Below are positions 11,801-26,558 of a stretch of DNA of 64,000 nt, one piece after another. Below the pieces are notes generated by a model. That model worked only from the letters and a program-made list of their open reading frames with translations. It made no database searches and was not told the DNA's origin. Both the position numbers and the translations under genes were made by a program. Source of the DNA: Bugula neritina (lineage: Eukaryota; Animalia; Bryozoa). Location of the stretch: contig OZ037769.1 in assembly GCA_964035545.1 (NCBI GenBank), forward strand, positions 2,542,001 to 2,606,000, in the 5' to 3' direction. Numbering within the stretch: position 1 is the stretch's first letter; the number at the start of each line of letters is the position of its first letter.

Positions 11801-14800
11801 ACATACACTATGTAATACATATACACTATATAATACATATACACTATGTAATACACATACACAATGTAATACATATACACAATGTAATACACATACACAA
11901 TGTAATACACATACACTATGTAATACATATACACTATGTAATACACATACACTATGTAATACATATACACTATGTAATACACATACACTATGTAATACAT
12001 ATACACTATGTAATACACATACACAATGTAATACACATACACTATGTAATACACATACACTATATAATACATATACACTATGTAATACACATACACTATG
12101 TAATACACATACACAATGTAATACACATACACTATGTAATACATATACACTATGTAATACACATACACTATGTAATACATATACACTATGTAATACACAT
12201 ACACTATGTAATACATATACACTATGTAATACACATACACAATGTAATACACATACACTATGTAATACACATACACTATGTAATACATATACACTATGTA
12301 ATACACATACACTATGTAATACATATACAGAATGTAATACATATACAGAATGTAATACATATACACTATGTATTACATACACAAAACGTAATGCATATAA
12401 AATAATTCAACTAAATTTTGGCTCAGCCCCAAAATATTCACCTCTTTTGGGCCGAGTTTGATTGGTGACAGGTTGTGCATATCCAGCACTTTCTTGGAGT
12501 TTTCCCATCCTGTTTCTGGACTCCACATTTTACCTTCACCCATTAGACCGAGAGCCATATGTGATAGAGGGGCGAGGTCACCACTGGCCCCAACCGTGCC
12601 TTTCTCAGGGACCCAAGGCAAACAATTTGCTACAATCAGCATTTTATACGTTATAGAGTATGCAATATGCATGTATTGTGCCAGTATTATATATGTGTGT
12701 AGTGTAAACAGTGTAGTGTAAAGAGTGTGGTGTAGAAAGTGCAGTGTAGAAAGTGTAAAAAGAGTAAAACTGTTACCGTTAAAAGCGTCGACGAACTGCT
12801 GTAGAACTTTCACAGAAATCCCGCTGTGTCCTTTAGACAGCACATTTATTCTTAGAGCCATGAACCGTCTCACCTGATCTGGTGCGAGGGGGTCACCCAC
12901 CCCCGCAGAGTGAGAGCGAATCAAGTTTTCTTGCAGTACACTACGTAAAAAATATTCATTATATCCAAACAAGCCTGCCATACTTGTGTATAAAAGAGAG
13001 AGATAAAGTGCTAAGAAGATATAACAGATGTACTACAATGCACTTGTGGGATAGTCTGAAATACATGTATAATATAGTCTGAAATACATGAATAGCATAG
13101 TCCAAAACTTACGTCAACTCCTCTGTAGGTATCACGACGTTTGCAAATTTCCCAAATCCCGTGTTTATGCCATAAGCCACTAAAAATCAGAATCAGTAAC
13201 CAAACTCATTAACTAAAATACTCCTACAATAACTACTATCAGTCTAATAAATTACAGACAACATTTTGAAATGCCGCAATGGCAATTAGGTCTTCTCATT
13301 TTCAAGCCATTTGTGGATAGCAATGACTGAATAACTACACAAAAATATGTATTCTGTAGCACATGGTTTCAGCAGAGATACACTGGCTAATAGGCCAGGC
13401 TGCTCATCCCACCCTTTACAAATTAGAATGTAAAACAGAACTAAGGGAATCAAAGCAAAGTCTAATTTCTGAAGCAAACTGATAAAGTTGTGAAATTTTT
13501 ATCTCCATTCTCGGTATTAACAATCACATGGTGACCCACATTATAAAATGCATTGTTTTTTTTGCAATGAATTGGCTGGGAAATCCCAGATGTTAGCATA
13601 TGAAATTTTTATTATACAACTCAATGTATAGACACTCATTATATAATATCAATAAGCAGAACCCAATTTAAAGAATTAACAAATAGACACTAATGCTGAT
13701 AAGTTGCAATTCAGAGCGGTGAGAAAGTGCAGAATGGAGTAGAAGCACTGACAGATATAACAACAGTGTCCTATTTTTTACCCCTTAGCTACTCTATGAA
13801 AAGTACTATCACTTGAAACAGTTTAAATTTTGAATTACCACCTTATAGTTGGTTTGTAGAAGCATTGCACAATCTTGCTTTAAAGTACTGCAGAAATTTC
13901 TCAAATTTTTTCAATTTTGTTTTGGAGCAATTGATACAATACAATGTAGGATGGGGCACCACCAACCTTTCCCTTCCTTGAGCTTTTGCTCAATAAGATC
14001 CCTGGCTTTAGCCACTCTGGTAAGAGCTTCACCACAAACCTAAAGGTTGAATAAAATATTCAGAGAAAGTTTACATTGGCTCTCACCACATTACATGTAA
14101 TCAGATATATGATATAGTTTACAATTTCAGCATTTAAAAATTGGATTACATTTTTTTCCAAAAATTTTCCAATATCTACTTCAGGCTACAGCACATCCTA
14201 GTGCGTGTGTGTGACACCCTAATGCATAAGGGTGACACCTGGATGCCTGAATGTATCAGTAAGCTGACACCTGAATGTATCAGTAAGCTGACACCTGAAT
14301 GTATCAGTAAGCTGACACCTGAATGTATCAGTAAGCTGACACCTGAATGTATCAGTAAGCTGACACCTGAATGTATCAGTCAGCTGACACCTGAATGTAT
14401 CAGTCAGCTGACACCTGAATGTATCAGTAAGCTGACACCTGAATGTATCAGTCAGCTGTGCAGCTGACTGTATCAGTAAACTGACACCTGAATGTATCAG
14501 TAAGCTGACACCATACCTTGATCTTGTATATTCCTCTGCCAAGATCCATGACCTCATTGGTCGAGAGACTGTGGCCATCCAGAACTATGTAGTCCTGCAT
14601 ATCACTTCTGCTGTTGGATATACTGTGAGAGACGGGCTAAGGAATACTTTACTCAACTTAGTCTAACTCTTTCTACTCAACTCTAAAGTCTAACTCTAAG
14701 CTGTAATGCTGTCGCAATAATCTAAACATAAACTGATTCTATAAAATATGCTAAATTAATTTGAGGTAGGAACAAAATTGGAGTTAAATTCTAAAGATGT

Positions 14801-16824
14801 TACTCCAGTTTCAACTCTGAATGAATTTTCAGACTTGTTATTTGAAACTTAAACTGAAAATGGATGAAAAATTTAAATATTCTGAAAGCTCTAAAAGGTT
14901 CCCTACAGTTGGATTTAAAGCTGAAAAATATTATGTAATAAATATCAAACACTACTACAAACACTCATTATGACAGCTAAATGCTTACTTTGCGTCTTTC
15001 TTTACCCTCTAAACAACCCTTGACTGTGTATACATTCTCCAGCCAAGACTTGAAATGTTGGCTGAGGTATTTGTATTGATGAGCAAACATTATTTATGAT
15101 TACATAACAGTTTGAACAGATTATCGCCTCCTGGTACACCATAACCAATAGCTGTGTAGCCTTAGTAGTGAAGGGACGGTTAATGGTTGGGAGATGAGGA
15201 AACCCCCCCAAACAAAATAGCTAGCTTATATATAACGTACTAATGCAATAGCTATATTATCAATTGTCATTATTAGTACATTTTATGTAGCATGTCAATA
15301 TATTATTATAAGTAATACATATGTAATAATAATTTTATGTACTAATGTATTGGAATATTATTATCATTATAAATTATTATCAGGTATATATAAATTATGT
15401 CTTAGATGTTTAATAATTTCCTAACAATTTTTCAGTAAATAATAAATTTCAATAACACATTTAAGTTATTTTTAAGCAACAGTAGTAATTAAATTTAACT
15501 TTAAATAGCTCTGCACAATACAATTTCACTTGACTGAATCGCATGTAATCGATTTGACAAACTGAAACCTAGTCACGGCAAACAGGCTGATTTTGGCAGC
15601 TTGCCCTATTATACAGAGCAGACTAAAGGTTGGCAGTTTGCCCAAACCCATGACTGGAGGCAAGGATACAGGTTCTCCATGGAGTTGAAGGTGTAATAGG
15701 ATGCCTTTTCGTTCTGCAGCACTACAACCAAGTCCAAAGGCACAATAAATATTCTAACTTGCACGGTCAATAACAAACATTCTTGAAGTCACAGAATAAA
15801 GATGCTACACAACACAATAAGCTAAATATCTTAATGGGTACCCTTGGTGTGTTGGTTTCAGATCTTTAAAAGCAGATAAAGTTTTTTTAGCTTATGAATA
15901 TTACGCGAATGTTAACTCTAATCAATGACAAGTATAACTAAAACTGAATCATCAATCTTGCTACAACAATGCATTCCAGCATTAGTATGAAATTGTTGTT
16001 GATTGACCTTTCTAGAATAGCCTAACTAGTTGTTATTGACTTCAAGCTTAAAAATTGTCTGTTATGTTAAAGCTGGAAGCTCACACTGTACTCTTTCCTA
16101 TACCATTTAAATTTAATATTAATGTCAATATTCAGCTTAAAAGTCCAACTCCAAGAAAGTTGCCACCAACTGCGGTATACCACTTATAATCTCCATAATA
16201 TTTAAATTTTGTGACTAGAATCAGGTTTAATAGCCATAAATTAAATTAGAAGGATTATTTTTACAGAGCTTCTCTATGTCTGTTATAATTATTCTAGTAT
16301 ATCAAGTACATTTGCCAAGTTATTTTTAACCCTGTTATGAATAACTTAAACTTTCATGTGTGTGTGATTAAGTGAGCCTCATTTTTCCATTTTTGTCTAC
16401 CAACTTGGCACCATACTAAGCAAATCTTATGTATAAACTTTAGAATAAAGGGCAAGTGCATGCAAACTCTAAATTGAATATGATAAGTCATAAGAGGTCA
16501 AACTACTCATAGATTTTGGCTGTAGTTACTATTACAGTATTAGTATCACAGTGACAGTACATTAGGCTCTTATTATAGCAAGTACGTACCAACAGACACG
16601 AAATCATCATCATTGAGCACGTCTTTGATAATGTCATCTTCATCTAGCATTGCACCGCCATTAGTCCTTCTGATTTCTGAAACCTTGTTCAGTATTGACA
16701 GAGCTGATGCCTTGAACTTAGCATATCGTTTTAGTGCATTCTCTCCTAAAGTTTTAATGGTGCCTGTCCCGTCACCGCAAGGAATTGCAAATATCTCTCC
16801 CTTCACGTAAACTGATAATTTCAT
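5862..16824 (-). CDS. HAL: Histidine ammonia-lyase (histidase) with N-terminal Par3/HAL domain
   Basis: Exons (minus): 16824-16590, 15721-15670, 14622-14517, 14039-13967, 13179-13113, 12940-12777, 12629-12442, 11697-11550, 10936-10855, 8897-8750, 8274-8209, 7865-7700, 7273-7139, 6303-6195, 6051-5862 (TGA). Motifs: [22 protein letters not shown]-forming [46 protein letters not shown]. Confidence 0.96.
6640..7147. repeat. 40-bp minisatellite x~13 containing the HAL exon end plus 5' splice site
   Basis: Unit tatacaggtgtagcgtaccttgttctatatatactaatag; on the minus strand nearly every copy reads TAGAACAAG|GTA(C/T)GC. Confidence 0.93.
8275..8749 (-). other. U12-type (minor spliceosome) GT-AG intron in HAL
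   Basis: 5' site GTATCCTTT; branch TTCCTTAAT ~11 nt upstream of the AG; flanking exons join in frame (DNP|MVF). Confidence 0.9.
8926..10845. repeat. 34-bp minisatellite (~56 copies) with 476-bp (14-mer) higher-order structure, filling HAL intron 8898-10854
   Basis: Unit gctagtaaagagtaagtcactgtatatactatga; variant agaacctagcta recurs at ~9049, 9525 and 10001 (476-bp spacing). Confidence 0.95.
10947..11118. repeat. 16-bp minisatellite (gtaagtacaatgaaga) x~10 at a HAL acceptor
   Basis: Direct reading. Confidence 0.92.
11720..12385. repeat. 18-bp minisatellite (gtaatacacatacactat) x~36 filling HAL intron 11698-12441
   Basis: Direct reading; source of four spurious low-complexity ORFs. Confidence 0.95.
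14232..14511. repeat. 24-bp minisatellite (ctgacacctgaatgtatcagtaag) x~11 starting at HAL donor 14516
   Basis: Direct reading. Confidence 0.93.
14623..15669 (-). other. Probable second U12-type GT-AG intron in HAL
   Basis: 5' site GTATCCTTG; branch-like TTCCTTAGC ~13 nt upstream of the CAG; exons join in frame (ENL|ISN). Confidence 0.78.
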
Positions 16825-18058
16825 AACTTGTTCAATGCGAGAGAAACTTCTAATACTATCACGCTACTAACGGAGTCGACCACCAATAGCTAGCTAACAG
16901 TGAAGTTATATACTCAAAAACTAACTGTATGCTACGCTCTCAGCGACCAATCAAAGCACTCCATTAGCACACACACCTCTGAGCTTCTAACATGTTTACA
17001 GACAATTGTTTAGTTCATACCTATTCATAACACAATCTCATTAATAAAGCGGCTAACAAAGCATAGCAAGTTGTACACAGCTCACAAAGCTACCTTGTTT
17101 CACTGCCAGTGGCTTAGCCTGGTTTATTACTGTGGGCGCATATTTCTCTGGATCAAATCCCCATGAGTCTTAAACTTACTTTTATTTACATCTAGTTGAG
17201 AAAATACTTACACATATGGTAATTAGGAACTGACTTGCATCAAATTATCAGTTGACTTGAATTAAATTAAAAATAAAGTTATTTATATTATAGGTTACAA
17301 TATTATAAAATACTATATTGTTATTTAACATTGCTAAGAAACTTTCAGGAACCAACATTCAAGTATTCATTTTATCAAATTTCACCACATCTAAAAAACT
17401 GCAAAACCTTTGGGAACTTTTTTAAGAAGCATTTTGTGTTAGGATGGAAGAGTGCAATACAATGCACAATAGTACAGTACATGACAATAACACAATGTAG
17501 TTTCACAGCATTCAACATTTGATTCATTACTTCATAACGCTATTATTCAACAACTTCAGGTGACAATATGCCGATCTTACCACACCTCATGTGTAACATA
17601 ATAAACAGTGTTTACAAGAGACAATGCTGCTTGTTCTACAGAAGTATTTATCAGCACAGGATGCTGTTATTTGAAGAGACCGAGTCTCAGTCTAGTAAAA
17701 GTAGAAAGTGATTTATTGTTTGTAAGAATTCATACAGTGAGTGATAATTTTGTGTTGAATAGAATAGAAGGTGGGGGTAAAATTTCTTCACAAAGTGAAT
17801 AAAATATTACATAACTTGATGTTTACTGAAACAGAATCTGGAATGGTCGACATAGTATAAAGGATTCAAGTAATAAAAAGTATTATTGACAGGATTAGGG
17901 GTGTGTCACAGCTGTAAGCCAATCAAATCATCAGATACAAGCATTGCTAGTAACTTTTGACATGCATCTAACTACATTGCATCAGCAATTTGTTTAAATA
18001 TTTATGCCTCTGTAGGAATGAGGATGTGTTGGCAAAGCCCAGAGTGTCTCAACTCACG

Positions 18059-21000
18059 CTAATACTTGGGTGGGGGGCTCTGCTTTTCGTATCGGCAATA
18101 AGAAGGATCTATAGGGTTAGCATCAAGGTCTCTCCTGTAATCATGTAAAGTAGTCTAGAGGCTAGCAAAATACTGCACCTTACAAAAACATTTTAAAATG
18201 TTTATTTTTAGCAATAGAAGATGTTTCTGTATCAATAGGAGTATGTCATCATTCAAAGAATGGGTTAAGTTACTATTGTTGATTGATAACAGCTTTGAAC
18301 ATTAAGTTTTATAATTGCAAAATTTACAACTAAACACATTAATACATCAGATAAATAAGTAGAAAATATCCTGAACATTTCCCCTTATGACCTACAAAGT
18401 TCGAAGGTCAACTAACAGACAAGGGGTTAATGCACTACTGGACTGCACAACTGGCTTTTACTATAACTAAGTGACTCATCTTTTCCATACATGAGAAAAC
18501 AACTCTTAAACATTCCATGTCAAAATAGAATAGAATTTCTGGAAGAATGAAGCTAACCTGATCATTCTGCAGCGATGAGCCTCTAGCCTCACTTTCATAC
18601 TGTCCATATCGGTGGCTGTTGCGGGGCTCCACAGCCTCTCCGCAACTACCGCAGCCCTAGGCCATGTCCTTGACATCAGGTTGGTCCCGTCTACCCACTC
18701 ACCCCACATGCAGCCCTCCCCGCCCATCACTAAAGCTTTCTGCTCGGCGGTTCCATTGAAGTTCTGCAGGAAACAGTAATAACACTACACCACTTGTCAC
18801 TAACTTACTACTTGTTACTAACTTACTACCTACTACTTCATATATTGCATAGTATGACTATTACTATGTATTGTATGACTATTACTATGTACTGTATGAC
18901 TATTACTATGTACTGTATGACTACTACTATGTACTGTATGACTATTACTATGTACTGTATGACTATTACTTTGTACTGTATGACTATTACTATGTACTGT
19001 ATGACTACTACTATGTACTGTATGACTATTACTACGTACTGTATGACTATTACTATGTACTGTATGACTGCTACTATATACTGTATGACTATTACTATAC
19101 AGAGGCTGCTGCCCCACTTAGTTTGAAATTACCAAGAGTAAGAATAAGTAGAGAGAAGATGCTTAACAACACGGCCAAGTTTTGTCAAAATATCGTCTTC
19201 ACATTCTAGAGGTGTTTCCTCATAATTAAAACAACCAAAACATAAATAAATAAAAAATATATCAGATGGACTCTCACAGCATCCATGGTTACTCTATCGG
19301 CAGCAACAGTAGCTGTGGCAGCAGATCATACAAAGTAAAGTTGTGATACACACGAATATACCTGAGGATCGCACTGGTAATACTGAGCCCAATTTTCACC
19401 GTATTTGATAACATTCAAATACCAACACGCTGACGTGATAGCTTTGTAGCCGGCAGCGGTGACAAATGCAACTTCCTGTGCAGCCGGTCGGACGCCAGTT
19501 GATTTCCAGACGTTGACCACGGCATTTGATGAGAGCTGCAACCAATGAGATTGAAGAAATGAAAAAGAGGCTGTAGGTACTGACCTGTGGGTCACAAGCA
19601 TAATACGACTGCCAGTTTTCCCCGTAAGCTATTCGATTCAGGTACCAGCAAGCAGAGGTTATTGATTGGTAACCTTGACCTGTTACCTTGGCCATTTCAG
19701 CAGATGGATCGGGAGTTGTCTTCCAAATGTTAACTACAGTGTCCTTAGCAAGCTGAAAGCAACATGCAACATACACAGGCTTTCCAACATAAAAGCAGAT
19801 AATTCCTGAGCAAAGACCTGATAAGCATATAAACTCACAATCAAGGTGTGGTAACAGCTTTAAATTATAATACTGAAATTAAAAAATTTATTATTTATAT
19901 AAAAATAGTTATGTAATTAGTCAATGACTCGCTCAAACGCCTTTTATAAGGAGTTATTTTTTCTTGTTAAACACAGCTTGTGTGAGAACACAACTCTTAA
20001 ATTACTTACTAATCTTTACTAACAATGTAGGTCTTTGCTCATTGGAGGCCTGCTAGTAGAGAAAGTCATAGAAGAAATTTAGATATAACTGTATTTCATT
20101 TTCAAATTTGTAGTTTCAGTAAATTTGGACTCAAAAATACATTACTTACAATTTTTATTTTTAAAAAGCTGTGGCAAAATTAAACAGGAAAATGGAAAAT
20201 TTTCTTCACATTCCCACACATGACAGGGGACCCTTAAATCTCTTCTATGGCTTTTAGCAAAAAAGCAGGCAGGCTAAAGCTGGTAAGTGTGGCTAAAGCT
20301 AGCAGGTGTGGTTACTTTTAGTAGGTGTGGCTAAAGTTAGTAGGTGTGGCTAAAGCTAGTAGGTGTGACTAAAGCTAGTAAGCCTAGGGCCACACAGTGC
20401 GTATTTTCGCATTCGAAAATTGAAACCACGGGTAGCAAAGGTGTCCACTGTAGCGTCAGTAATGCGTGATGCGTGATAAATAAAGCTTTCATTTTTAAAT
20501 CGCACCCGCTTTCAATAAAACGCAATTTACTGGAATGTAGCATTAAAATAAAGAAATTGGGCTCGCTGAATAACTACTAGCCAATTAGGTGACGACGACA
20601 GAGACTGCTGAGCGACAAGTGCGAATGTTTTCTCAACCCGTACAGTGGACACCTTTGCTACTTGTGATTTCAATTTTCGCATGCGAAAATACGCACCGTG
20701 TGGCCCTAGGCTAAGTGTGGCTAAAGTTAGTAGGTGTGGCTGAAGCTAGTAGGTGTGGCCAAGTTTACAAACAAAAGATGTAAAAAGCGTGCACAAAGCT
20801 TCCATCTCAGAAAATATAGTCTCAAAAAGCCAATGTATGTGGAAATAGACGACAAGGTTAGAAAATAGTTAGAAACCCAAGTTCAACAGATGTAGCGCCA
20901 CACAAACAGGAAATGGTTGTCTCGCTGTCTAAACACAGCAGCATGCCATGTATGGCGCATACTGGACAGACAGACAAACTAGGGCAACGACAGCATTTAA

Positions 21001-24000
21001 GGTTTTGTATAAACATTTATAACATTACAATAGAATAACCACTGAGCAGTATGTAACCAAATGGTATGTGTATAAGCAACAGAATAGTTGATACATTACA
21101 ATTACAATAAGCTTGTTGACTGTAATACAAGTTTATAATACATAATAATACAGCACGAAATGTATTTGGACCGCCATGTCATGTGAACAAGTATGGTCAA
21201 GTAGAAGCAATGAAATCTAACATAAACTAACGCAAGTTTACAAGACATAACAAACAACACATATGTAGAGCATCTAGTAACAAGTACCTTGACACCGTTG
21301 TCAACAGGTTCCTGCCAGATTATATACTGTTTGTTCAACTTCTGCACAATGTCAGTCACTCTGGAGATGTAGTACGACTCCAGCCCGGCGTAGTCCGCAA
21401 TTCCCGCCTTCACCATGAAGGCCTTGATATCCGGATTTGATTGCCTGCACACACCACCGCAGTAAGAGTTAGAATAGTTGCTCATAGTTTCTACTCCATA
21501 TTCAAACTGATTACCAAGAAACTACACCATTAACAGCTAACAGCCACAGAACACACAGCGACTGTCCCTATAGCCCAACTTATAGCCCTATGCAAACTCA
21601 CCAGCAGGTGAAACTGACTTCGTCACCTCCCAGGTGCAGGTACTGATCCGGGAACACCTGACCTACTTCGCTGAACAACTTCTCAATAAACTCGTAGGTG
21701 GAGTTCTTAGATGGGTCGATGGGGCCGAAAGTACCATCGGGCTTTCCGTCAGAGCCATAGCATGGAGTGAGTAGGCCAGGCTGGCCCGGGCCCCAGGCGA
21801 GTGTGTGACCTGCAAGAAAATGGTGCCATAGTTAAACCGGCATAGATAAGACTCAGACTGGGTTGATAAGAGTGTCTAGGGCCCTGAATATTAGATATAG
21901 TGGTGAGTTTTATTACCCTTCACATAACTGTGATAGCTTTTCAATGTACAATGTAATCAGGTCCACATATTCAGTTGCTAAATTGTTGATTAAATTAGTT
22001 TATATGATATTCTATATTCCTATTTGTATAATACTCTATACAGTGTAATATAGTAATATATATAACATTCTATACAGTGTAATTTAGTAACATATATCAT
22101 ATTTTATACAGTGTAATATAGTAAACGTATAATATTCTATACAACTATTTGCTTGACACCCAAGTAGACAGAAGTCAACAAGCACTGACTCAGAGTGTCA
22201 ACAAGTACTGACTCTGTGTGTCAACAAGCACTGACTCAGAGTGTCAACAAGTACTGACTCTGTGTGTCAACAAGCATTGACTCTGTATGTCAACAAGCAC
22301 TTGCTCAGAGTGTCAACAAGCACTGATTCAGAGTGTCAACAAGCACTGATTCAGAGTGTCAACAAGCACTGATTCAGAGTGTCAACAAGTACTGACTTAG
22401 TGTGTCAACAAGCACTGACTCAGAGTGTCAACAAGCATTACCTGGCGTGTCAAACTCGGCTACCACCCTGATGCCCCTCTGCCTGGCGTACTCTATGACA
22501 TCAGCAACGTCCTCCGGGCTGTAGATGTGAGTTTGAGGATTGTAGGCGCCCTTCTGACTGAGATCTGGGTACACTCTGCTCTGGTAGGGGAATGACTGGG
22601 AGTCAACAATATGCCAGTGAAGCACATTGTACTTGGCCATCGACAGCGCTGACTGTAAAGTGATCAAAACTCTACATTTCAGAAATCACAGCAGGAAAAC
22701 CAAGTTGTTTTAGTTACAGCAGGAGGCTAACACTGTAATACATGAGCAGTAACAGAGTCTAAACTCTACACAATGGTATGGCTCTGTGTCTAGATTTTAT
22801 TGTTTATTTTGTGAGAGATGCTCAACATGTAAACATAATGACAACTTTGCAGGGATATACTGGTAACAAAAAGAGACAAGTTTTAATCAATAAAAACATG
22901 TTGATAAAGGGAAAGGATGTGAGGGCCCACATAACATCAGCAATATAATTTAGAAAACTCTGCTAAACTTGTGGGAATGACTTGTACATTTGGATGATCA
23001 AAGAACCATTTGGAAAATCTGAAAACTATAATTTGTTATTTTGCCCTTTACTGTTTGTCCCTATATTTTTAGCTACAACAATTAGTTGTTGTTTAAACTG
23101 CATTTCAAAAATGACACAATATTGTGAGAATAGTGGAGAATAAAAATTTGTCTCTTGTAAAGTTTTGACAAACTAAATTGTTATGCAGATAAAACTCTCG
23201 ATTCACCAGGGAAATGTAGATTAAATGACAAATACTTTAAAAACAATCACTGTGAAATTATCCCACCATCATGCAGATATTTTGGTAGGTTGAACTGATA
23301 GCTAGCTACCCTGAACTTGGCTAAAAATAAACTACAGATCTGATGATATGCTATATACAAATGGGTGGGTTGTCATGTGATCTACAAATTACATACTTGC
23401 CAGTGTATAACATCATGTTTATAACACATTAGATTAGGAATAACTGTAATTCATTGTGCAAAACTTAGCAACTGGCAAACGACTGGCATTAACTTAGACA
23501 CACTTTGTGTCTCCTCTTCTTTTAGATGAAGTGAGGGGCGACATTCAACCCCCCCTCCCCGCTGATCAAAAGATAGCGTCTCTCAGACACAGGGGAGGAC
23601 AACTGGCTATGAGATGTTTCAGTGAAGGTATAAATTATAATATTAGTACAACTATTCGTCAACTTCACACTAATAAATGTGATTTCAACAAGTTGTATAA
23701 TTGTTTAAATTCCGTCACATTATATTATAGTCTAAATACAAATGAAAATGCAGAACATGCCAGCTAGCCAGAGACAATAAACAAGAGTTGGTCGTACTTA
23801 CAGGTAAGTATACGGAGGTTTATAAACACTTACGACAAACTGGAGTAGAATATTCTTCTCTACGTAATGTCTGGATGTGTCAACCAGAAAACCTCGGTGA
23901 GGAAATCTCGGTCCATCTTCAATCATGGTCTCATTGACGTACCACTGAAAGAGACATATTAGTAACATACACTGTAGAAGCTGTAGTAACTGTACTATCT

Positions 24001-26558
24001 GTAGTAACTGTAACACTGTATTAGCTGTAGCAACTGTAACACTGTACTAGCTGTAGTAACTGTAACACTGTACTAGCTGTAGTAGCTGTAACACTGTACT
24101 AGCTGTAGTAACTGTAACACTGTACTAGCTGTAGTAGCTGTAACACTGTACTAGCTGTAGTAACTGTAACACTGTACTAGCTGTAGTAACTGTAACACTG
24201 TACTGGCTGTAGTAAATACACTAGCTGTAGTAACTGTAACACTGTACTAGCTGTAGTAACTGTAACACTGTACTAGCTGTAGTAACTGTAACACTGTACT
24301 GGCTGTAGTAAATACACTAGCTGTAGTAACTGTAACACTGTACTGGCTGTAGTAAATACACTAGCTGTAGTAACTGTAACACTGTACTAGCTGTAGTAAC
24401 TGTAACACTGTACTAGCTGTAGTAACTGTAACACTGTACTGGCTGTAGTAAATACACTAGCTGTAGTAACTGTAACACTGTACTAGCTGTAGTAACTGTA
24501 ACACTGTACTAGCTGTAGTAACTGTAACACTGTACTAGCTGTAGTAGCTGTAACACTGTACTAGCTGTAGTAACTGTAACACTGTACTAGCTGTAGTAAC
24601 TGTAACACTGTACTAGCTGTAGTAGCTGTAACACTGTACTAGCTGTAGTAACTGTAACACTGTACTGGCTGTAGTAAATACACTAGCTGTAGTAACTGTA
24701 ACACTGTACTAGCTGTAGTAACTGTAACACTGTACTAGCTGTAGTAACTGTAACACTGTACTAGCTGTAGTAACTGTAACACTGTACTAGCTGTAGTAAA
24801 TACACTAGCTGTAGTAACTGTAACACTGTACTAGCTGTAGTAACTGTAACACTGTACTAGCTGTAGTAACTACACTAGCTGTAGTAACTGTAACACTGTA
24901 CTAGCTGTAGTAACTGTAACACTATACTAGCTGTAGTAAATACACTAGCTGTAGTAACTGTAACACTGTACTAGCTGTAGTAACTGTAACACTGTACTAG
25001 CTGTAGTAACTGTAACACTATACTAGCTGTAGTAACTGTAACACTGTACTAGCTGTAGTAACTACACTAGCTGTAGTAACTGTAACACTGTACTAGCTGT
25101 AGTAACTGTAACACAACGTCACTGTACCATCTGGCCGCTGCCGCTGCTGTACACGAGCTGACTGAAAGTCTCTAAGCCGCGAAGGGCACCCCACAGGGTT
25201 TTAGCTTCTAGTTTAGCTCCGGCTGATGAAATGTTCAGCGTATCTACAATATTCAATGCTTTACAGAAAGTTCAAAAAATGGAATTGCAGACATTTAGCA
25301 TTATAAAAATACCAAGTTGCTGGCGTTTTTCTTGCAATGAGGTAAAAAGATGAAACGTGTAGAGGTGTGTTTCAAAACACACAAAATTCCACGTTTAAAA
25401 AGCTATAACTATCTCTGGGCTAAATCAAGAACAATTGTGGACCAGTTATTAAAAATATCGACAAAATAATATTGCAACTTAACTGTAATGTCTGCAAAAC
25501 TGCAGTCTTTGTGAAAAAGAAATTTACAAAAAGAAAACTTACAGTCTTCATTCATCCCAAAAGCAGGCATTGGTTTGCCAGAACAGCTAGTCTCAACATT
25601 TACATATAGAGCTGTTATGTCTCCATTCCTGTTCCAAATTCCATATTTCTGCCTGTAGGCTTTAGACCAAGAGTAATCCTGAGGTATTACAACAAAAGTT
25701 AATTTCAGTTTTAATCTCAAGTTAAACAAATTTTCCATAGCAACATACAACGACAATCATGATCATAATCAAAGGCAACACTCTTGGTTGATAGGCACAT
25801 AATTAAAATCCAAATTTATGCTGGAAAATTAAATACACCGAACTCCAAACAAACAGTCTAAGTCTTTACCCACAGCCTCACTCCTCGAAAACTTAAAACT
25901 AAAGTCAAACTGAAAAAATCAATTGTAAGGCAAAATTGGTTATACTAATAGTATTAGTAATACTATAACAGTATAAGTATAACTGTAAGTATAGAATACA
26001 GTTAATGCTATCACTGTGATTAATCATTAACTTTAAGTCAAAACGAGTGACTTATCACTAAAACTAAAAGTAAATCAAACTGATTAAATTTAATTAACTT
26101 CAAGTAATCTAAATCTAATCATAATCGCTTTATCATAATGACAATCACTATGATAATGAGTAACTGTAATCAATATGAATATGAATATCAATACCTAATA
26201 CTAATAGTAATACTAATAGTAATAGTAATTGTCAATAACTTACCTTCTCATACTTATTGAAACTTTCGCTGGGTGTATCAAATAAAATCTTATAGTAGCG
26301 TTCAAAAGCCGCAGTTAAATCATCACAGCTACTGCCAGTTGACCAAAAAACGAAACCGGAGCTTTGAACATTCAAAACTGAATTACTAGTTTTCCAAACT
26401 TTCGGTAGAGGTGTTGGTAATCCTTCTTTTACTGCAGGAGTGTCAAATGGGAAGGCATTTACAGATTTGGGAAAGTATCGATTGTCAAACTGAAATTTAT
26501 GATCTAAACTAAAGGCAAATGCTAAATAGCAAAACAAAAAAATGATTGAGCTCTTCAT
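18059..26558 (-). CDS. HEXB: Beta-hexosaminidase (GH20, HEXA/HEXB family) with a duplicated exon 8
   Basis: Exons (minus): 26558-26244 (signal peptide), 25678-25543, 25243-25128, 23944-23834, 22652-22442, 21809-21602, 21444-21288, 19752-19585 (8a) or 19535-19362 (8b), 18763-18558, 18134-18059 (TAG). Motifs: [37 protein letters not shown], catalytic [32 protein letters not shown]. The symbol denotes the family; the HEXA/HEXB split is vertebrate-specific. Confidence 0.95.
18845..19098. repeat. 21-bp minisatellite (tgtactgtatgactattacta) x~12
   Basis: Direct reading; hexosaminidase intron, near the acceptor at 18764. Confidence 0.92.
19362..19535 (-). CDS. Hexosaminidase alternative exon 8b (58 aa; WYLNVIKYG, lacks the Arg)
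   Basis: ttgcag acceptor, gtatat donor, phase 0/0, 174 nt, no stops, homologous to 8a. Confidence 0.85.
19585..19752 (-). CDS. Hexosaminidase alternative exon 8a (56 aa; WYLNRIAYG, alpha-like)
   Basis: tttcag acceptor, gtcagt donor, phase 0/0, 168 nt, no stops. Confidence 0.9.
20270..20762. repeat. 19-bp tandem repeat (taggtgtggctaaagctag) interrupted by a MITE
   Basis: Copies at 20270-20381 and 20712-20762. Confidence 0.85.
20382..20711. mobile_element. Non-autonomous PIF/Harbinger-type MITE (330 bp), ~70-bp TIRs, TAA target-site duplication
   Basis: Left end gcctagggccacacagtgcgtattttcgcat...gtccactgta; right end is its reverse complement tacagtggacac...cgcaccgtgtggccctaggc; TAA at 20379-20381 and 20712-20714. 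Confidence 0.88.
22170..22437. repeat. 23-bp minisatellite (gtgtcaacaagcactgactcaga) x~11 beginning at hexosaminidase donor 22441
   Basis: Direct reading. Confidence 0.92.
23965..25114. repeat. 26-bp minisatellite (ctagctgtagtaactgtaacactgta) with shorter variants, filling hexosaminidase intron 23945-25127
   Basis: About 45 copies. Confidence 0.95.

Follow-up and report, generated by a model that had tools for sequence, protein, structure and literature searches.

Can a single β-hexosaminidase gene supply two differently charged substrate pockets by choosing between two versions of one exon? The question is raised by a gene on the reverse strand of a 64,000-nucleotide (nt) stretch of Bugula neritina DNA (assembly GCA_964035545.1, contig OZ037769.1, positions 2,542,001 to 2,606,000), which we call the window and from whose first letter all positions are counted. 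The gene, predicted to encode an enzyme of the GH20 family, has about ten coding exons, one of which is duplicated, i.e., present in two copies termed 8a and 8b (Table 1). The original prediction, made from this DNA sequence, held that splicing chooses between both copies and thereby yields subunits like those of human HEXA (α) and HEXB (β) from one locus. We arrive at a modified proposal, to which we assign a probability of about two in three: 8a and 8b are a mutually exclusive exon pair that alters the pocket charge of a bryozoan β-hexosaminidase.

In the mechanism that we propose, each messenger RNA would carry either 8a or 8b, never both, and either exon would supply the same 56–58-residue piece of the catalytic barrel. 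The swapped piece would comprise the Trp and the Tyr that contact the sugar by stacking and binding, the two residues that set the pocket charge in humans and the Tyr-Gly stretch of the dimer interface. With 8a, the enzyme would have an α-like Asn-Arg pocket and accept anionic substrates, e.g., 6-sulfated or sialylated glycans. With 8b, it would have an Asn-Val pocket that lacks the positive charge and favor neutral substrates. The two copies would be kept from joining by the 49-nt intron that separates them, which would lead to exclusive inclusion without the need of a frameshift.

Exons 8a and 8b lie in tandem, have intact reading frames and begin and end in phase 0. Each has splice sites of its own, with the acceptor tttcAG and the donor GTcagt for 8a, and ttgcAG and GTatat for 8b. 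The encoded peptides share 62% of their residues (BLASTP E = 8e-25) at a nucleotide identity of 54% over the aligned codons, a resemblance that, judged from these alignments, is beyond chance. The decisive residue is Arg in 8a (codon CGA, 19635-19633) and Val in 8b (codon GTT, 19412-19410), and the loop following the Val-Trp-Lys motif is two residues longer in 8b. We reproduced the coordinates and, letter for letter, the translations of the original prediction, as well as the difference in the loop and the flanking junctions at the end of exon 7 (21288) and the start of exon 9 (18763). An assembly artefact was ruled out as the origin of the pair, because only 54% of the DNA letters agree between the copies and because independent assemblies contain the pair as well.

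We compared the gene with known families exon by exon, by means of single-exon searches. Exons 5, 6, 7 and 9 each scored above the 22.3-bit cut-off of the catalytic profile PF00728 and covered its positions 23-226 (exons 5-7) and 304-347 (exon 9). This leaves a gap one exon long, positions 227-303, between exons 7 and 9. The N-terminal domain PF14845 (Glycohydro_20b2) was found in the piece 25241-25134 with 36 bits against a cut-off of 27, and likewise in the orthologous contig L018. A genome-wide GH20 scan also recovered the locus. The coding sequence (CDS) begins at 26558 with a signal-peptide-like stretch and ends with the stop codon TAG at 18061-18059. By its sequence, the gene is a HEXA/HEXB-type GH20 β-hexosaminidase of the secreted or lysosomal type. 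In tblastn alignments with the single-copy, full-length homologues P0032, P0055 and P0038, one and the same stretch of the homologue matched 8a and 8b alike. We hence conclude that 8a and 8b encode a single structural segment in alternative forms, as had been predicted. Both the homologue alignment and the Pfam gap indicate that the GH20 domain has room for one copy, which supports the reading of 8a and 8b as exclusive exons.

How would the choice of exon affect the pocket? Both 8a and 8b align with residues 415-468 of human HEXB and with the equivalent stretch of HEXA in chains from the Protein Data Bank (PDB); β numbering was taken from the full-length chain 3lmy_A, with exon position 1 corresponding to β 415. 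In both exons, β Trp424 is matched by the Trp of Val-Trp-Lys, and β Tyr450 by the Tyr in Trp-Tyr-Leu-Asn. At the site of β Asp452-Leu453, i.e., α Asn423-Arg424, 8a has Asn-Arg and 8b has Asn-Val. The pair in 8a thus matches the α-type pocket. Among PDB entries, 8a matches best with 5bro, whose sequence here departs from natural β at one site alone, with Asn-Arg where β has Asp-Leu.

That these two residues matter for anionic substrates in the human enzymes, as the original prediction had stated, is documented (PMC3129794, PMC4774620). When D452N and L453R were combined with the exchange of a four-residue loop, HexB gained activity on the sulfated substrate MUGS and on GM2 (Matsuoka et al., PMC3129794), and the α pocket is positively, the β pocket negatively charged (Tropak et al., PMC4774620). 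In the simplest reading, the choice of exon would determine how the pocket is charged that, in the human enzymes, receives the 6-sulfate or the carboxylate of sialic acid. The α-like and β-like assignment of the original prediction could be kept for 8a, which has the α pair, and applies only in part to 8b, where Asn-Val stands instead of the β pair Asp-Leu. Its own caveat, that 8b retains Asn and gains a Lys two residues after the Val, was to the point; this Lys is confined to the window and the L018 lineage. The window gene has enzyme family, segment and the specificity site in common with human HEXA and HEXB, the subunits of the isozymes HexA, HexB and HexS. However, the human enzymes are encoded by two genes diverged over their whole length, whereas in the window gene a single exon differs.

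Are both exons maintained by selection? We searched 1.8 billion representative proteins with 8a as the query, obtained open reading frames (ORFs) on genomic contigs of related animals and then retrieved these contigs. The exon array was found in seven related lineages, probably bugulid bryozoans, with two to four tandem copies each, which are described here by their residues at the specificity site. Closest to the window were the metagenome contigs L018-L021, with the same pair at 93% (8a) and 91% (8b) amino acid identity and an intron of likewise 49 nt. Two copies each were present in L022 (Logan run ERR9287624; Asn-Arg and Asn-Ile, intron of 38 nt), L023 (Logan run SRR7134474; Asn-Lys and Asn-Ile, 122 nt) and L031 (Logan run SRR31252259; Asn-Arg and Asn-Glu, 38 nt). 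L024 and L030 (ENA ERZ4903308 and ERZ4903328) have three copies, Asn-Arg, Asn-Glu and Asn-Ile, with introns of 516 and 233 nt in L024. In L027 (Logan run SRR25569777) there are four, Asn-Arg, Asn-Ile, Asn-Glu and Asn-Met, separated by introns of 155, 278 and 269 nt. The reading frame was intact, the length 168 or 174 nt and the AG/GT sites present in all 15 copies checked, which came from six lineages.

The copies fall into types. First exons, termed type a like 8a, form one clade (ultrafast bootstrap 90, SH-aLRT 98, 98% of bootstrap trees), and the Asn-Glu exons, termed type c, form another (99/93); 8b is of type b. A second HEXA/HEXB-type gene of the window genome contributes a single exon of this kind, which lies outside the type clades. 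As the exon types are orthologous between lineages and the paralogue's exon stands apart, the duplication is older than these lineages. At the position aligned with α Arg424 and β Leu453, all seven first exons have Arg or Lys, and the later exons have Val, Ile, Met or Glu. Later exons of types b and c share the longer loop after Val-Trp-Lys together with a conserved Arg that is absent from type a, and several further positions are type-specific.

Between the window and L018, we counted four nonsynonymous and eight synonymous changes in 8a (ratio of nonsynonymous to synonymous rates, dN/dS, 0.12; Fisher p 0.0006), and five and nine in 8b (dN/dS 0.14; p 0.0005). Across the lineages, where synonymous sites are saturated, identity at the three codon positions was 0.74/0.81/0.43 for type a and 0.78/0.85/0.43 for type b. 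As judged from these substitution patterns, both exons are under purifying selection, in agreement with the predicted combination of diverged DNA and a conserved protein. Nucleotide identity between the window and L018 was 93% for 8a, 92% for 8b, 87-90% for introns, 95% for exon 7 and 96.5% for exon 9. By this comparison, 8a and 8b evolve faster than the constitutive exons, yet clearly as coding sequence.

Evidence for splicing came from RNA data. Seven RNA runs contain part of the gene, and four of them, from four studies, were mapped on 19140-21900. The data are Logan contigs, accepted at a likeness threshold of 95%, that are 95-99% like the window (2-3% diverged), from which we conclude that the source was a close strain or sibling species. 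The joint between exons 6 and 7 (21443/21601) was present in the runs X1, X2 and X5, which validates the mapping. A contig of run X2 leads from 21288 directly to 19535 and so connects exon 7 with 8b, passing over 8a (depth 1756; shorter side 28 letters), and a second contig lies inside 8b (19404-19529). Exon 8b is thus genuine, and splicing can leave out 8a. Of the predicted mutual exclusivity this shows at most the half that concerns 8b, and RNA evidence for the use of 8a was not found. No joint between 8a and 8b (19585>19535) was seen in the four mapped runs, where no contig lay on 8a. Contigs on exon 7 end at 21288 in X2, X4 and X5, with two letters beyond in X2 and X5. We had considered these ends as the fork between 8a and 8b, which have their first two letters in common; we do not count them as evidence, because an allelic variant at position 3 of 8b would explain them just as well.

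These data leave room for another explanation, namely that 8b is the working exon and 8a a pseudo-exon relic that has not yet decayed, or is used at trace level without a separate function. In RNA, only 8b and the joint from exon 7 to 8b appeared, with a depth of zero on 8a in all four runs. Also, the protein collection held no transcript-derived fragment of 8a, though none with 8b either; all its entries for both exons are ORFs from genomic DNA, so this has no bearing on expression. The conservation of 8a is difficult to reconcile with a relic. Type-a exons have stayed intact, with AG/GT sites and 168 nt, as one clade in six lineages whose synonymous sites are saturated, dN/dS of 8a against the close relative L018 is 0.12 (p about 0.001), and a basic residue was kept in seven of seven first exons. 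We therefore regard a relic as improbable.

It is more difficult still to envisage that both exons are normally included together, which would give an enzyme with a duplicated internal segment. The sum of 168 and 174 nt would keep the frame, and automatic gene models from fish and a moth contain both copies (P0088, P0160, P0161, P0104). However, the RNA joint skips 8a, the catalytic profile fits one copy, the intron between the exons measures 49 nt, and curated fish isoforms have one copy each. Regular co-inclusion thus appears hardly credible.

Several points weigh against exclusive exons that switch the pocket charge. None of the four mapped runs had a contig on 8a, although these contigs are filtered and the runs diverged. 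Runs X4 and X5 lacked both 8a and 8b despite deep coverage of exons 6 and 7; as 8b is missing there too, the holes on 8a cannot be taken as absence. The mapped stretch reaches from exon 6 to 8b, and the junctions 19585>18763 and 19362>18763 lie outside it. Joint inclusion or joint skipping of the pair keeps the frame, and introns of 40-50 nt do get spliced in some animals. In the relatives with 122-516 nt between the copies, steric hindrance cannot be the mechanism. Moreover, the β-type pair Asp-Leu at 452/453 is not found in 8b; with its Asn, 8b does not have the repelling Asp of human β, and the shift in specificity may be of any size. Finally, the exon 8 segment is also part of the dimer interface.

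This last point leads to an alternative in which the exons are likewise exclusive and tune something other than charge, i.e., the dimer partner or dimer stability, the pH optimum or the binding of a cofactor or inhibitor, through the loop and the surroundings of the interface Tyr. The segment includes the stretch aligned to human α residues 424-429, which lie on the subunit interface (PMC11699244). The long loop with its conserved Arg in types b and c, the other type-specific positions and the Asn retained in 8b, by which the human β pocket is not copied, would all be compatible with such tuning. The sole position that parts first from later exons in every lineage, however, is the Arg424/Leu453 site, which takes positive, neutral and negative residues by turns. 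Also, teleost variants of this exon diverge at these two positions as well, with Asn-His in one and Asp-Leu in the other. We consider tuning independent of charge unlikely, if less so than a relic, and retain the pocket charge as the property that the exon pair alters.

What might enforce the choice between 8a and 8b? The intron separating them is by far the shortest in the gene, and none of its branch-point-like sites is more than 39 nt away from the donor. It is identical to its L018 counterpart at 47 of 49 positions without an insertion or deletion, compared with 87-90% in the neighboring introns. Other loci have short introns between the copies as well, with 38 nt in both L022 and L031 and 44 nt in the unrelated contig L029. 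The length of 49 nt and this recurrence favor steric exclusion, and the intron probably blocks splicing of 8a to 8b in this way. Nonsense-mediated decay cannot enforce exclusivity, because the lengths of both exons are multiples of three. Steric hindrance of this kind is known from α-tropomyosin exons 2/3, where the intron is too short for the upstream donor to be spliced by way of the downstream branch point, and exons 9/10 of PKM and 3A/3C of ketohexokinase are classical mutually exclusive pairs that alter enzyme properties. The window gene resembles these systems in its tandem homologous exons of equal phase and in the short intron. It belongs to another enzyme family, and exclusivity and steric block, demonstrated in the known systems, are proposed here.

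We also searched for RNA structures that could govern exon choice, since clusters such as those of Dscam and 14-3-3 zeta are ruled by competing RNA pairing. No intronic 9-mer was common to at least four lineages, as might be expected of docking and selector sequences, and splice-site duplex scans in the two-variant loci did not rise above shuffled controls. The window region folded no better than shuffles (z = +0.41) and had no stem comparable to those described below, and an Rfam scan of 18000-22000 gave no match.

Different results were obtained for the relatives with three or four variants. Here, the 3' splice site of a variant pairs with the downstream intron and the exon is thereby looped out (L027 2188-2208 with 2496-2516 and 1733-1764 with 2083-2114; L024 1387-1402 with 1679-1694). 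For the Asn-Glu exon, which shows this in both L027 and L024, the inverted repeat in the intron lies about 300 nt further downstream. The stem of the Asn-Glu exon closes both the minimum free energy and the centroid folds (z = -2.9 and -2.7) and contains one compensatory change, at the third base of the exon. In a second pairing, the intron that follows the Asn-Glu exon pairs with internal sequence of the exon behind it (L027 2417-2443 with 2721-2747; L024 1602-1625 with 1875-1898). Both pairings are conserved between L027 and L024. These exon-looping stems are reminiscent of Dscam and 14-3-3 zeta; they differ in that we identified no single docking site shared by the variants, and no pairing above background in the window or the other two-variant loci.

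The splicing signals of 8a include a UGCAUG motif of the Rbfox type (TGCATG, 19767-19762) within the polypyrimidine region, 15 nt upstream of the acceptor. The motif occurs twice in L018, at 35 nt in L027, and in two copies just downstream of the type-b exon of L023. Overall, it is about as frequent as expected by chance, and it is absent from two lineages, so we note it as a lead only.

Is the gene the only source of such isozymes in this organism? The scan of the 216-Mb genome placed the second HEXA/HEXB-type gene at about 4.297-4.302 Mb of the contig that also holds the window. Its single exon of this kind encodes Asn-Tyr at the specificity site and is 44-45% identical to 8a and 8b. The organism is hence not dependent on one locus alone, which sets it further apart from the human situation and weakens the original view of the exon pair as one locus in place of a gene duplication. 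Two distant GH20 genes are located on contigs C1 and C7. The scan also showed, on contig C105 (G000; about 13007-18474), two tandem GH20 genes, L001 and L002, with in-frame TAA or TAG where Glu is expected, among others in GGE and WGE motifs and in the catalytic GGDE motif. This suggests a code that reads TAA and TAG as Glu, like that of peritrich ciliates, and the contig may be an epibiont contaminant in the assembly.

Has the same exon been duplicated in other animals? Two copies of the segment were found in the fish and moth models named above and on metagenome contigs. A region search with the Labeo rohita model revealed that teleost hexa isoforms, known from RefSeq/Ensembl annotation alone, carry either an Asn-His or an Asp-Leu version of exactly this exon within single species, as seen in alignments (pairs P0166/P0180, P0186/P0189 and P0173/P0177; e.g., Cyprinus carpio, and Astyanax mexicanus X1 versus X3). 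The Asn-His version has a Ser-Tyr-Gly interface motif, which the Asp-Leu version lacks. A genomic look-up of the fish model P0088 gave no match. Teleost hexa is thus like the window gene in having an alternative exon at the same protein position, with one version per isoform and differences at the same two residues. There is no orthology between the teleost versions and types a and b, and, as far as sequences tell, the duplication in teleosts was probably independent of the bryozoan one. On L029 (8046-8420; ENA ERZ27284692, metazoan), we found a further tandem exon pair, Asn-Tyr and Asp-Asn, with AG/GT sites, which we consider another independent duplication of this exon. Our full-text literature search found no paper on hexosaminidase exon duplication or mutually exclusive exons, teleosts included. 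We put forward, tentatively and at slightly less than even odds, that in lysosomal hexosaminidases of animals the exon carrying the pocket charge has been duplicated in tandem and spliced exclusively time and again, so that different lineages reached, each on its own, a splicing-based counterpart of the vertebrate α/β split.

The features of the gene are compiled in Table 1. The last coding exon, for which acceptor and frame were read from the sequence, shares 74% amino acid identity with L024 and L027 (tblastx).

Table 1. Positions of the β-hexosaminidase gene and of the exons around the duplicated segment in the window
Feature	Position	Strand	Evidence
GH20 β-hexosaminidase CDS	18059..26558	-	ORF list; tblastn with P0032, P0055, P0038; single-exon Pfam searches; tblastx
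Exon 6, catalytic Asp-Glu pair in HLGGDEV	21602..21809	-	sequence; RNA contigs; PF00728 positions 102-176
Exon 7, constitutive, 5' of the pair, phase 0 end, donor GT 21287-21286	21288..21444	-	sequence; RNA
Exon 8a (type a), 168 nt, 56 amino acids	19585..19752	-	sequence; homology; tree; dN/dS
Intron between 8a and 8b, 49 nt	19536..19584	-	sequence
Exon 8b (type b), 174 nt, 58 amino acids	19362..19535	-	sequence; homology; dN/dS; RNA contig and joint
Exon 9, constitutive, 3' of the pair, phase 0 start	18563..18763	-	sequence; Pfam
Last coding exon including stop codon	18059..18134	-	tblastx against relatives; acceptor and frame read

Downstream of the hexosaminidase gene, a gene on the same strand (16573-16824) begins with a Par3 N-terminal oligomerization domain (PF12053 in orthologous contigs), and this neighborhood is syntenic in L018, L019 and L024. 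The hexosaminidase introns contain four minisatellites with periods of 19-26 nt, at 18852-19098 (247 nt), 20272-20380, 22174-22437 and 23989-25114. The last, with 1.1 kb the largest (26/52-nt period), lies in the intron that precedes the exon near 23940. Their copy numbers in the window are unlike those in L018. The intron between exons 7 and 8a harbors an element some 330 nt long (20381-20712, with the insertion reaching from about 20390 to 20740) that resembles a miniature inverted-repeat transposable element, with 72-nt inverted arms (20381-20452 and 20641-20712) that are 93% complementary. It is missing from the orthologous L018 intron. Contigs from the RNA runs covered it up to a depth of about 250,000, presumably from many genomic copies.

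In humans, the glycan ranges of HexA and HexB differ largely by two pocket residues. This difference lies at the root of Tay-Sachs and Sandhoff disease and serves as a guide for modified HexB and HexM, which are engineered therapeutic enzymes. If exon choice toggles this pocket, the bryozoan exons would be a natural series of positive, neutral and negative variants on one scaffold, and a clean example of alternative splicing and gene duplication substituting for each other. The pair in the window and the teleost isoforms together suggest a repeated evolutionary solution, one that is unmentioned in the literature searched. Should this hold, bugulids with their two to four variants, teleost hexa, the animal represented by L029 and perhaps a moth would be separate cases, and one gene would give rise to isozymes and mixed dimers for anionic, neutral or perhaps cationic glycans.

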